In this document: positions 23,747-52,660 of the stretch, piece by piece
Numbering within the stretch: the first letter of the stretch is position 1
Layout of the letters: every line of letters begins with the position of its first letter
NCBI GenBank assembly: GCA_038496445.1
Contig: JALMLS010000211.1
Span: forward strand, 62,001-126,000
Direction: 5' to 3'
Length of the DNA stretch: 64,000 nucleotides
Origin: Trichosphaerium sp. ATCC 40318
Taxonomy: Eukaryota; Protista; Tubulinea
Translations under genes and position numbers: made by a program
Notes under the pieces: model-generated
The model's database searches: none
What the model was told of the DNA's origin: nothing
The model's input: only the letters and a program-made list of their open reading frames with translations

Positions 23747-24376
23747 ATGAGCAGTAACGAAGATAAAGAGACAAAAAAGCGTAAAATAGCTCAGTGCGAT
23801 GAAGATAGCGCGGAAATACCTGCTCCGGACGCCAAAAAACAAAAAGTTGACAAAACGCCGAAAAAACCTTCAAAGCCAACAAGCCTAGCCGAAATAGACC
23901 TAGATACATTCTACAGTAAACAACCATACGCTGAGGAGTACTTATCAGAGCCAGTAACTGATGAATTGGTCAAGGAAATAGAAAAAGAATTAGAATACAA
24001 ATTACCTCAGTCTTACATTGATTTTATGAAAAGACGAAATGGTGGCATGCCTGTAGATAGCTACAAAGCTTTTTATATAGACGGAGAAGAGTATGTGTCT
24101 ATTACAGGCATCTATGGCATTGGAAAAAAGAAGAATTATAGCTTATGTGGAGGCCTGGGACAATCAAATTGGATTGACAACTGGGGATATCCAAAAATTG
24201 GAATTTGTGTTTGTGATTGTCCTTCTGGTGGTCATGATATGATTATGTTAGATTATCGTAAAGGTGGTGAGCCAGAGGTAGTACATGTTGATCAGGAAGG
24301 TGACTTTAAAATTACTTTTGTTGCAAAAGATTTCGAAACATTCATACTTGGTTTGGAAGAACCTCGTGACGAATAG
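23747..24376 (+). CDS. SMI1/KNR4 (SUKH) family protein, intronless, with basic NLS-like N-terminus
   Basis: TDELVKEIEKELEYKLPQSYIDFMKRRNGG, WGYPKIGICVCDCPSGGHDMIMLDYR, GEPEVVHVDQE, AKDFETFILGL match bacterial SMI1/KNR4 proteins. Confidence 0.92.
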   Translation: MSSNEDKETKKRKIAQCDEDSAEIPAPDAKKQKVDKTPKKPSKPTSLAEIDLDTFYSKQPYAEEYLSEPVTDELVKEIEKELEYKLPQSYIDFMKRRNGGMPVDSYKAFYIDGEEYVSITGIYGIGKKKNYSLCGGLGQSNWIDNWGYPKIGICVCDCPSGGHDMIMLDYRKGGEPEVVHVDQEGDFKITFVAKDFETFILGLEEPRDE

Positions 24377-24672
24377 CTAAAGTATCTTATTCTAAACATA
24401 GAATATCAATAAAACCACAGTTATTAGTTAATTGTTTGATTCAATGTTTGTAAATAAAACCAGTTAAAACAGGTGTTTCACAATCTTTGTTGCCATCTAT
24501 ATTTTTCTTTGACCTACAGTACGTCTAGAAGATACTAATCAGTTACAAGCCTGTCTCATATTCCTAGTATTTTTGCAGTTATGCTTCGTTATAATTAACT
24601 TTAAAGCAAGTGACCTTGCAACTTATAACGTGTTCAAGTGTACGACAATGAGCTGTTTCTGCCAAAATTTTA

Positions 24673-26030
24673 TTACATACATTGTCCGAATGCAGAGCAT
24701 ATGGCCAGTAAAGCTGTATCAAATGTTAGAAACAAATCATTGTAGCAAATCGTACCTGCAAGAACTACATTCCATCCCATAGTTGCACTTGATGATGTAC
24801 TTGATGCTGCATTTGGAGCAACTGGTGCAGCTGGAGTGGTCATTACGGGAGCCATAGTGGGGCTGTTAGTTGGAGATGTAGGTGTAGTTGGTTCTAGAGT
24901 CGTTGGTTCTGGAGTCGTCGGTTCTAGAGTTGTTGGCTCTAGAGTCATCGGTTCTGGAGTCGTCGGTTCTAGAGTCGTTGGTTCCACAGTCATCGGTTCT
25001 AGTGTCGTTGGTTCTGGAGTCGGTTCTAGTGTCGTTGGTTCTGGAGTCGGTTCTGGAGTCGTTGGCTCTGGAGTTGTCGGTTCTGGAGTTGGCTCTACCG
25101 TTGGTGTAAAATCTACACACGAACAACTTGTAAAAGTAACAACAATCCCTTCATTACCGCCACCAGTCTCAAGCAAGAGCTGTAATTTATTGATACCTGA
25201 AACCGCGCCACTCAACGTGAAACCAGGGTTTGCGTTGTAGTCTGTTTCAGGCCAAGTCCCACAGTTATGAGTAAATTCTGCACCATTTAGCCAGGCCATG
25301 AGTATTTGATCAGCGCCCCAACATTTACCAGTTATTGTGCAATCTAGTAAGGTATTAAAATCAACATCAACTCGGCTTCAAAGCCTTCCAGATATTTTAC
25401 AAAGTGAATTAAAAAAAAACCCTTTGCAAAAAAGTTACAAAAAACCACTTGGTACCTTGTGTCAAATTAAAAGACGTTTCATACACGCTCTCCGACTTTG
25501 AGATAGATGGATTACCAGGGTTCTTTACCCATCCCGACTTTAAAATTAGTTAGTATCTAGTTGCAGCAAAAAAAACGAGTAGATTCAAAGGAAATTTAAG
25601 CGAAAAACAAAACCCGCCATTGTAGGCTTTACGCGCGTAAGCAAAACTGGAAACAAAAGTCGAAATCAAGTGATCAAAAAATCCCAATTTGGTAAAGCTT
25701 GTACCGTAGTGAAATTATCGTTTGTAGGTGGATCTATAACATTTGATGCTATTGTACCAGAGTTTTCTGCTTTACAACAACCATTTCCATCCGGAGATCC
25801 GCTTTCCCAACACGTAGAAATAGCAGGATCATCGCTACTGCAGATTCTCCAATGTCTTGACTCAGAAACGGGAGTTTCGTAAAGATATGCGTCGTCAACA
25901 CCTTTATTATGCAAGAATGAGCGTCAGAATAACTTTTAAACGCTTACCTGTTGGATACAAGCTTATCTGGTTTAAGCATGTTTTTAAATTTGCTGGGATG
26001 GGCACTGACGCGTTTAAAGCATGTACTAGA
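24673..26030 (-). CDS. Secreted/surface glycoprotein with Cys-containing N-terminal domain, Pro/Thr/Glu mucin-like stalk and hydrophobic (GPI-signal-like) C-terminus; 5' end uncertain
   Basis: Exons in ORFs 25666-25914 and 24673-25299; (PTT[P/L]E)n stalk; small-residue stretch SSTSSSA followed by hydrophobic tail. Confidence 0.65.
24880..25105 (-). repeat. Coding 12-15-bp tandem minisatellite (EPTTP/EPTTL/EPTP units)
   Basis: Plus strand repeats of GGTTCT[A/G]GAGTCGT[T/C]-like units. Confidence 0.9.
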
Positions 26031-26518
26031 GCTAAAACAAAGAAAATAAAGCGGATCATTAAAGGTGGTGCAATTGAATATTTCGCGATTTTTTGAGAAG
26101 ATATTGCGCAATGCTACTACCTTAATCGGATTCACAAAATACAGTTATGAGTCCAAATCGATGATATGTAACAGGTACTTCAGTCGTCCGAGATAACTAT
26201 TTAAAAAAACTCCGACATGTACAAAGCTTAGACACGGAACTTCCACTAATTATATTAGATTCCCAGAGCGTTGGCTAGACGCTTCTGCAATCTCTATGCA
26301 TTCCAAATACTAAGTCGAACAGGATACTAAATCAGTAGCATCTACTCACCAAGGCTAAACAAAAAGAGCGGAATTATCTTTCAACTACATAGACCAGTTG
26401 GAGAACTTTCAGCTCTGAGCAATGTCGTAACAGTTGTACACAACGTTGGGCAAATAAAGGCACCAAAAAGGAGGATTAACATAGGTTGTTTAGAGCGCAA
26501 CACATGGAGGGTTTTACT

Positions 26519-50792: not shown

Positions 50793-51221
50793 GACACTTT
50801 TAGCAATTTTCGTAAGCTCAAATGTACATAAATACCATGTAAATAAACCAGTTCATCTGGTGTTTATATTTCAATGTCCATTTCATGTTATTGATCCGTT
50901 TAGAAAAAGATAGCAGTACTTGCAAGTCTTGTTAAAATAAAAAGGTAAAATTTTGTCTCCCATAGAGATGCAAAGGTCCCTGGACATTCTGAAAACCTAC
51001 GCATTTCTCAACATTGTTTTTTTTCATGTTTTGGGAGAACAGTTAACACTTCATAACCGGCTGTTATCTGAATAAGCCAAGAATTCCAGCGGTATTGTTG
51101 GTAACGTTTCTAGATACTGACGTAACAATTTACACTTGTGTAAAAATAATTCTAGTGTTTTGTTATCTGTTCCCTTTTCCAAAAAGGTCTGTTGACCGTC
51201 AACATTAATAATACTTACCAA

Positions 51222-52100
51222 ATGGCATACTATCGCAGCAATGCGGTACCTATTTCAATTCCAATAAGGGTTACAGCAGCAACTGAACCACGTGAAGAAC
51301 CTTCAACACCACAAGAAGAAACAGAAGCTACAACGCTTACAGAAGATATACACGCGGTAATTAACGTTTTACAAGTGCTTACAATCAGTATTAATCAAAA
51401 CATGTAGATCTGTCACCTATTACGCCTTCCCGTTGAGATATACCTTGATATCATTGATATAGACCTTGAAACATACATTAAACTCCCTATTTTATGTAAA
51501 AACACGACACCAACAAGATTCGATACTGAACTTAACAAACATGGAAAATGGCTTAGAATCAAAAATTTTACTCATGTGAAGGGAGAACAACATTATGTCA
51601 ATGGTATACTTGAAGGAGAATGTAAGAAGTGGTATGATAACGGACAAATTGAAGAAACGTGTTGTTATGTAAATGATAAACAACATGGTCAGTATAAACA
51701 GTGGTATGAGACTGGCCAATTGAAGGAACATTATCACTATGTCAATGGTACATTTGAAGGCGAGTTTAAGACTTGGTATGAGAATGGTCAATGTCAAGAA
51801 CACTGCTACTATATTTATGATAAACTTGAAGGAGAATACAAGAAGTACCATGATAATGGAACGCTATGGGAACAATGCTATTATGAGAATGGTACAAGAG
51901 AAGGACTTCAATGTATTTGGTATAAAAATGGCCAATTGAAAATGCTTTGTAACCTTGTTAATGGTATACGAGAAGGAGAGCAAAGTACTTGGTATAAAAA
52001 TGGTAATCGTCATGAACAGTTTAATTGTGTAAATGGTAAGCGTAATGGTGAAGTTAAGTATTGGAAAAGGGATGGAACCTTACTAATTATGGAAGGGTAA
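51222..52100 (+). CDS. F-box-like + MORN-variant (YwqK-like) repeat protein, intact, 1 intron
   Basis: ...EDIHA|ICHLLRLPVEIYLDIIDIDLETYIKLPILCKNTTPTRFDTELNKHGKW then about 7 repeats YxNGxxEGxxKxWYxNGQ. Confidence 0.88.
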
Positions 52101-52499
52101 TGAAAGCAAAAGTTGAGCAATGCCAACGCAGTTTCATTGAAACCTCTGTATTTAAAATATTAAAGTTACTATATTTTGTATTAATTAGATTCCTACAAAT
52201 GTCCAGGTTACTCGATTCTGTTGGTACTGCCCAAAGAACAATTTAATGGTGGCTCGGATTGGCTTTTTTAGCAACAACTCGGCTTTCAAACAAGAGTAAA
52301 GTTGTACTTACACCAATTGGGTTTGTAATTAGTCCTTTTCCAAGTTTTTCAAAGTCTTTAAAAAGGCGAAGATATTAATCATAACGACCAGAATATTTGC
52401 GTTACCTCAAAAACAGTTTTTGTTTCACGGAGGGCATGTCCAAATTCTAAATAGGTCAATCCATGTCTTAGTTTGGAAATGTCGAAGTATACCAATTGC

Positions 52500-52660
52500 T
52501 GATACACTGTAATTACCCACATATACGAAGTGGAGAATATAAGAAGTGGCCAATAGAGGGTACAAAGTAATTACACCAATGGTATATGCAACGGAGAATA
52601 CAAGGATTAGCATTCAAATGGTCAATTGAGAGCATAGTGATTACACAGTGGTAAACGAGA
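52500..52660 (+). pseudogene. MORN-variant repeat remnant
   Basis: SGEYKKW and NYTNGICNGEYKD*HSNGQLRA* with stops and frameshifts. Confidence 0.6.

Follow-up and report, generated by a model that had tools for sequence, protein, structure and literature searches.

The stretch examined here, positions 23747-52660 of a 64,000-nt window of the Trichosphaerium sp. ATCC 40318 genome (the window being forward-strand positions 62,001-126,000 of contig JALMLS010000211.1, labelled C140), contains two genes for SMI1/KNR4 (SUKH-1) proteins, several loci of an F-box-like/MORN_2 family, other F-box-type loci and a gene for an MLKL_N-like protein. We propose, with a probability of roughly three in four, that this is ordinary protist DNA in which scattered copies and wrecks of huge gene families lie beside an acquired SUKH gene, and that together they do not make up a functional unit. 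Copies of very large, lineage-specific families would have landed independently and decayed in ordinary gene-dense DNA. In the main family a divergent F-box-like N-terminus precedes a MORN_2 array, and its members are most likely interchangeable substrate receptors of Skp1-cullin-F-box (SCF) ligases; an F-box-LRR family and canonical F-box genes would supply further copies. One bacterial SUKH-1 gene probably arrived by horizontal transfer, took on the host composition and gained a Lys-rich leader resembling a nuclear localization signal (NLS). Its 3' 569 nt would later have been copied to a second site, where the duplicate acquired a new 5' end and, although purifying selection persists, has evolved faster than its parent. 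The MLKL_N-like gene would be one member of a five-member family of stand-alone helical proteins. In this proposal the genes are neighbours through density and local duplication. Each may singly take part in host-microbe conflict, and the SUKH domain would then be a protein-binding or inhibitor module, possibly a nuclear one.

The reading is carried by the abundance of the families in the assembly searched (eukaryotic, 70.3 Mb, 642 contigs). A six-frame search gave 5,997 candidate MORN_2 repeats. The N-terminal domain of the MORN family has ~1,351 candidates, one per ~52 kb, and all 150 that were scored had E < 4e-20; the canonical F-box-like domain PF12937 has ~1,809, one per ~39 kb, with all 150 scored lying above the cut-off. 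The F-box-LRR family returned 348 matches and 2,831 candidates genome-wide, which we take to represent hundreds of genes. Several F-box-type matches recur unchanged on small contigs, suggestive of recent duplication or of haplotypes that were not collapsed. If the domains were spread uniformly, 29 kb should hold ~0.56 N-terminal domains and ~0.74 F-box-like domains (~1.3 in all). The MORN family is clumped, however: a hand count among the 150 listed N-terminal matches found ~33 pairs no more than 30 kb apart where ~9.5 are expected. Since F-box and MORN-type families are abundant and clumped throughout the genome, their grouping in this stretch is unremarkable. The initial annotation had described the 29 kb as a repertoire of anti-toxin and anti-pathogen genes, a view that does not survive copy numbers of ~1,351, ~1,809 and hundreds for the component families, with local clumping everywhere. 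The listed genes lie on both strands with housekeeping genes between them, and co-location beyond the genomic background, by which a gene cluster or defence island would be recognized, was not found.

Most elements of the initial annotation were borne out. The two intronless SMI1/KNR4 genes reported earlier were both confirmed as single open reading frames (ORFs). Copy 1 (23747-24376, plus strand) encodes 209 amino acids and matches PF09346 with 81 bits (E 1.5e-22); residues 1-41 form the Lys-rich, NLS-like leader and residues 69-200 the SUKH domain, and its GC content is 0.379 against 0.369 for the window. Copy 2 (40234-40890, plus strand, within an ORF at 40198-40890) scores 82.6 bits (E 4.7e-23). 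In both genes positions 1-123 of the 125 in the profile are covered, and both scores are to be set against a cut-off of 25.4 bits. Self-comparison of the window by blastn, together with pairwise alignment, matched 40386-40954 (plus strand) to 23869-24435 at 91.4% identity over 569 nt. The duplicated segment takes in the last 508 nt of the coding sequence together with 59-64 nt of 3' flank and stops ~30 nt beyond an AATAAA signal, and the 5' 152 nt of copy 2, upstream of the start of the duplication at 40386, is unrelated to copy 1. The two genes are one gene and one partial duplicate of it, the product of a single event, with the copy located 16.5 kb from its parent. Over 160 codons the pair shows dS 0.18 and dN 0.04 (dN/dS 0.23), and in a tree with 120 bacterial homologues all of the terminal change falls on copy 2, which has also lost the Lys-rich leader. 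This pattern would fit a parent that has kept its function and a duplicate that is younger and under weaker, but still present, selection. The truncated 5' end of the copy and its termination ~30 nt past AATAAA would suit retroposition, but no poly(A) tract and no target-site duplication were found at the copy. As the parent is itself intronless, the loss of introns is uninformative on this point, and the duplicate may have been made via DNA or via RNA.

The new 5' end of copy 2 had been interpreted as a MORN-variant fragment, which would have made the gene a physical chimera tying the two families together. We could not substantiate this. The 5' part has no MORN_2 or other Pfam match at E <= 10 and no paralogue or other match in the genome; a single 22-residue unit is MORN-like at E 0.003 in a window-sized database, a value that is not significant. 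With neither a significant MORN match nor a paralogue for this 5' end, the physical tie between the families is unsupported.

The SUKH genes do have a clear bacterial resemblance. Across the ~165-residue domain, copy 1 is 49-60% identical to its 120 best database matches (lowest E 4e-54), and every named organism among these 120 is bacterial, the named sources being Bacteroidota, Paenibacillus, Caldalkalibacillus, Gammaproteobacteria, Planctomycetota, Spirochaetota and Polyangiaceae. In the tree the window copies pair on a long branch and no bacterial donor can be identified. A six-frame search of the genome for SMI1_KNR4 gave seven matches and three strong loci. The third gene, on contig C201 at ~62.8-63.7 kb (L010:7795-8745, minus strand), encodes 316 amino acids with a Lys-rich C-terminal tail. 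Its identity with the window copies is only 39%, in an alignment of 46 residues, and it resembles a different bacterial subfamily of ~270 amino acids, mostly from Bacteroidota, at 35-41% identity. Because the C201 gene and the window copies match different bacterial subfamilies, two separate acquisitions are indicated. The bacterial identity, the host-like GC content, the added leader and the purifying selection (dN/dS as above) together support the proposal, made in the initial annotation, that bacterial-type SUKH genes have been domesticated here, as far as this can be judged from sequence.

One explanation for these features is that the SUKH proteins are nuclear immunity proteins, taken from bacteria and neutralizing DNA-targeting toxins of prey, symbionts or pathogens, a role for which no gene cluster would be needed. 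The SUKH superfamily is known for immunity against nuclease toxins and for sporadic transfers to eukaryotes (Zhang, Iyer and Aravind, 2011; PMC3113570), and the Trichosphaerium genes would conform to this in having been acquired twice independently, from different SUKH subfamilies, in being under purifying selection and in carrying a Lys-rich extension on each of the two full genes, at residues 1-41 of copy 1 and at the C-terminus of the C201 protein. These extensions may be NLSs, although the assignment is from sequence appearance only, and the leader was lost in copy 2. No toxin gene adjoins the closest bacterial relatives in any of the five genomic contexts examined, one of which has a CdiI_ImmP immunity-family gene next to the SUKH homologue, and no toxin gene lies beside the SMI1 genes of the window. 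In addition, conserved eukaryotic SUKH proteins (Smi1/Knr4, FBXO3) have been inferred to differ from toxin immunity proteins and to act probably as protein-binding adaptors (PMC3113570). On balance we regard nuclear immunity as unlikely.

The loci of the MORN family were located with a profile of the N-terminal domain, made from intact members elsewhere in the genome, and with whole-protein phmmer searches. Two genes are intact. The first (26519-27339, minus strand; 250 amino acids) matches the N-terminal hidden Markov model (HMM) at E 8.5e-20 and MORN_2 in Pfam with 35.9 bits; in our splice model exon 1 (27339-27310) is followed by a 68-nt GT-AG intron and exon 2 (27241-26519). The second (51222-52100, plus strand; 275 amino acids) matches the N-terminal HMM at E 2.9e-18 and MORN_2 at E 2.9e-25, with a modelled exon 1 at 51222-51356, a 51-nt GT-AG intron and exon 2 at 51408-52100; its ORF at 51408-52097 contains six MORN_2 (PF07661) repeats scoring 85.8 bits, which places it in the family. 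The long frames of the two genes (26522-27241, minus strand, and 51408-52097, plus strand) have no in-frame ATG, and upstream of each lies a short ATG exon followed by the GT-AG intron. Most of 20 paralogues have this 5' intron as well, and its conservation shows that the members of the family are normal spliced eukaryotic genes.

Two further loci are decayed. At 28438-29245 (plus strand) the N-terminal HMM matches at 28438-28644 (E 6.8e-14) and MORN_2 at E 3.1e-13 in Pfam, but the MORN matches (28620-28844 and 28823-29242) are in other frames than the N-terminus, so that the locus spans three frames and is frameshifted. At 42173-42554 (plus strand) only remnants are left, an N-terminal piece at 42173-42280 (HMM E 3.8e-5; phmmer E 0.0011) and a single repeat at 42456-42554, for which the MORN_2 match in Pfam reaches only E 0.054. 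The initial annotation had counted five loci, two intact and three decayed; the two intact genes stand, with the addition of the modelled 5' intron, and the decayed loci are two rather than three, there being no fifth locus in the stretch unless the 22-residue unit of SMI1 copy 2 is counted. The copies in the window share at best ~66% nucleotide identity, and none is a recent duplicate of another. Intact genes stand next to frameshifted and fragmentary ones, which supports the birth-and-death turnover suggested for this family. The MORN_2 arrays match bacterial proteins with E down to 1e-43, labelled YwqK antitoxin by one source, a similarity that is at the level of the repeats only. A YwqK-type antitoxin would pair with a YwqJ-type toxin, and the eukaryotic locus has no such partner.

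Two other F-box-type loci lie in the stretch. A fragment of a canonical F-box (28011-28264, minus strand; PF00646, E 6.7e-5, 23.1 bits against a cut-off of 20.5) covers profile positions 12-43 and has the LPNE part of helix 1 in another frame. This is a frameshift within the box, as befits the pseudogene already recognized in the initial annotation. The gene previously called F-box-LRR (29738-30718, plus strand) is clearly of the LRR_6 (RNI) type, with E 4.3e-18; its weak N-terminal F-box-like motif, at E 0.11, falls below the threshold, and a paralogue scores 0.0036.

Whether the N-terminus of the MORN family is itself an F-box was approached in several ways. Pfam finds no F-box in the N-termini of eight local members, six whole family proteins or 53 members from outside. 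In profile-profile comparison with hhalign, 75 N-termini set against 20 F-box-like domains of this genome with Pfam support gave a probability of 67% (P 5e-5) over 51 columns, with reversed and shuffled controls at P 0.14-0.59, and in this alignment the TRFD..HGKW "linker" conserved in the family coincides with F-box helix 3 and the tryptophan that follows it. AlphaFold2 predicts for the gene at 51222-52100 a helical N-terminal region with a confidence (pLDDT) of ~50, and a MORN repeat array at pLDDT >90 that matches solved MORN arrays. A search of solved structures with the N-terminal profile returned nothing meaningful. A predicted complex with Skp1 had an ipSAE of 0.09; this used only the C-terminal exon of Skp1, the fold of the partner was uncertain and the supplied alignment went unused, so that the value weighs on neither side of the question of Skp1 binding. 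The Skp1 gene (contig C137, ~79.7-80.6 kb, L022) is split into at least three exons, and there are at least three further Skp1-like loci (contigs C57, C88/C430 and C51). The N-terminal profile finds just 55 proteins among 1.84 billion representatives, with MORN_2 present in 46 of 53. DUF5758, which precedes MORN_2 in some database matches, was considered as the identity of the N-terminus and proved unrelated (hhalign probability 0.2%). From the profile comparison we think it somewhat probable that the N-terminus is a divergent F-box.

A different explanation of both groups of genes would be a foreign source for the SMI1 genes or for the entire set, through bacterial contamination, mis-assembly or an integrated segment of a giant virus. 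The close bacterial matches of the SMI1 genes could be read in this way, as could the language-model neighbours closest to the MORN family, which are Nucleocytoviricota clusters with MORN_2 in which an F-box occurs in 10-19% of members. However, the SMI1 genes are flanked by intron-containing eukaryotic genes on a contig of at least 159 kb (matched out to 159.5 kb), their GC content equals that of the window, where composition is flat along the whole length at ~36-39% GC, and they exist as two diverged copies with additions of a eukaryotic style. The MORN genes have spliceosomal introns, and the viral contigs of IMG/VR contain no relative either of the SMI1 gene or of the MORN-family N-terminal domain. 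A foreign origin of this kind is largely refuted and we consider it extremely improbable.

The stand-alone MLKL_N-like gene (38911-39432, minus strand) encodes ~139 amino acids in three exons (~39432-39282, 39220-39060 and 39018-38911, stop included) separated by introns of 61 and 41 nt, the first junction splitting a codon, and this structure is conserved in four paralogues, making a family of five loci genome-wide. The gene and its paralogues were scanned against Pfam exon by exon. For exon 1 of the window gene MLKL_N (PF22215) is the top Pfam match (profile positions 2-39, 12 bits) and for exon 2 it is the only one (53-94, 18.8 bits); the rough summed score of 30.8 bits compares with a cut-off of 27 bits, although each exon alone is below it. 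In all five paralogues MLKL_N is the best or sole Pfam family for each piece scanned, with collinear matches below the threshold, exon 1 from the start of the profile up to position 39 (12-15 bits) and exon 2 over positions 49-94 (15-22 bits). The six-frame MLKL_N scan of the genome had no match inside the window at E <= 1, profile searches of solved structures with exons 1 and 2 returned nothing meaningful, and among language-model look-alikes of exon 2 there was no usable match. The assignment made in the initial annotation is plausible, resting on the collinear matches and the four paralogues, and membership of the window gene in MLKL_N is likely but unproven. Plant RPW8 and fungal HeLo domains are related to the MLKL N-terminal domain. 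Elsewhere in the genome, at 999586-1013744 of contig C2 (L070-L072), two MLKL-like paralogues in opposite orientation enclose a pair of intact F-box-like/MORN_2 genes, all inside 14 kb, an arrangement that may be segmental.

The initial annotation had gone on to propose that these genes co-function against toxins and pathogens, binding effectors and passing them to SCF/NEDD8-dependent degradation or triggering cell death. Every component family does belong to a conflict-type domain class, the SUKH genes are bacterial-type, the MORN_2 arrays have the bacterial, antitoxin-labelled matches noted above and the family turns over by birth and death, and the F-box homology of its N-terminus is moderately supported. 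Some observations also speak against our own reading. About six F-box-type loci in 29 kb, where ~1.3 would be expected under a uniform spread, make the region denser than average by ~4-5 times, and the general clumping of the family is the only explanation we have for this. In the MLKL-like family, three of the five paralogues have MORN-family genes within 3-6 kb (the other two have none within 10 kb), and an F-box-LRR gene in divergent orientation lies 630 bp away from the C201 SMI1 gene; at these densities the proximities are not significant, yet they hint at some association. Finally, copy 1 and the C201 gene, acquired independently, are both NLS-tailed, and the paired tails look like directed domestication and would fit an anti-nuclease role. 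Set against a joint repertoire are the size of the families, with hundreds to more than 1,000 copies clumped all over the genome, the unsupported link between SMI1 and MORN, the origin of the two SMI1 genes in one duplication, the unrelated housekeeping genes interspersed among the listed genes, and selection on the SMI1 pair that is purifying and not diversifying. We therefore judge a co-functioning repertoire very unlikely. A bolder combination, in which SUKH was captured twice and targeted to the nucleus by the added Lys-rich signals, to protect the DNA against nuclease toxins from prey or from intracellular bacteria, and the >1,300-member F-box/MORN_2 family serves as a fast-turnover repertoire for the recognition of foreign proteins, is in our view a distinctly unlikely proposition. 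A conflict function for each family separately appears plausible from the domain types encoded.

The neighbouring genes are in keeping with ordinary protist DNA. Ubc12, the NEDD8-conjugating E2, does lie just upstream as first annotated (22201-22818, minus strand; Pfam UQ_con, E 5.2e-27, in an ORF that as shown retains intron sequence), its top matches among solved structures being UBE2M/Ubc12 at E 4.5e-33 against ~1e-14 for other E2s. It is a housekeeping enzyme, and its location adds nothing to the idea of a cluster. Between the listed genes are exons of other ordinary intron-split genes, namely a prolyl-tRNA synthetase (ProRS-C_1, E 9.5e-23, with an anticodon-binding domain), a Ras-family exon and an Snf7 exon. 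Among public RNA data one small run contains any of the stretch, and its contigs cover only 41464-42027, outside the SMI1, MLKL-like and MORN genes. Within 38701-44700 this identical match falls solely on an intronless 183-aa ORF (41458-42009, minus strand) with a signal-peptide-like start and no Pfam family, which we take to be an unrelated gene for a secreted protein. A 208-aa ORF (24673-25299, minus strand) with a long, mucin-like Thr/Pro-rich repeat of the TPEPT type and no Pfam match is located between the first MORN gene of the stretch and copy 1 of SMI1. Beyond the stretch, 53276-53837 and 54723-55272 form an inverted duplication (562 nt, 97% identity) that encodes a 113-aa Cys-rich ORF (53422-53763, minus strand), again with a signal-peptide-like start and no Pfam match.

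The main value of these results is a negative one, in that the idea of a eukaryotic "defence island" dissolves once copy numbers are counted genome-wide, a caution that holds for all windows of this genome. Sporadic transfer of SUKH genes to eukaryotes and the use of SUKH as a recognition module have already been described (PMC3113570); two independent bacterial transfers into one protist, both with NLS-like tails, would be a modestly useful addition, as would the occurrence in a protist of stand-alone MLKL_N-like proteins that form a family of five. If TRFD..HGKW is indeed the third helix of a divergent F-box, the organism would possess a repertoire of SCF receptors on the scale of plants and nematodes.

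Compared with known systems, the window protein of ~139 amino acids is close in size to the 142-position MLKL N-terminal four-helix bundle (PF22215) and collinear with it over exons 1 and 2, and it differs from MLKL in having no pseudokinase or other sensor domain. The SMI1 genes share with bacterial SUKH-1 immunity proteins the Pfam family, 53-60% identity (to bacterial proteins of ~175 and ~322 amino acids), intronless genes and the sporadic pattern of bacterium-to-eukaryote transfer set out in PMC3113570. In contrast to these they lie in a eukaryotic chromosome without a toxin partner, with a Lys-rich leader added in copy 1 and the 5' end replaced in copy 2, although the closest bacterial relatives examined are also stand-alone genes with no adjoining toxin. 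SUKH domains serve as recognition modules in FBXO3 and in fungal F-box fusions (PMC3113570), and the themes of F-box and SUKH, with SUKH as a protein-recognition module, recur here, whereas in the window the F-box-type and SUKH genes are separate and not fused. Measured against the Pfam F-box the N-terminus of the MORN family is too divergent to be recognized (0 of 61 members detected). F-box and MORN-repeat families are reported for giant viruses that infect amoebae (PMC5753266). From the viral families the MORN family differs in its host-type 5' intron and in that its N-terminal profile has no match in IMG/VR. With these and with the F-box expansions of plants and nematodes it shares an architecture in which a variable array of repeats follows an F-box-type module at the N-terminus, and, like them, it is present in hundreds to thousands of locally clumped copies, many of them pseudogenes.

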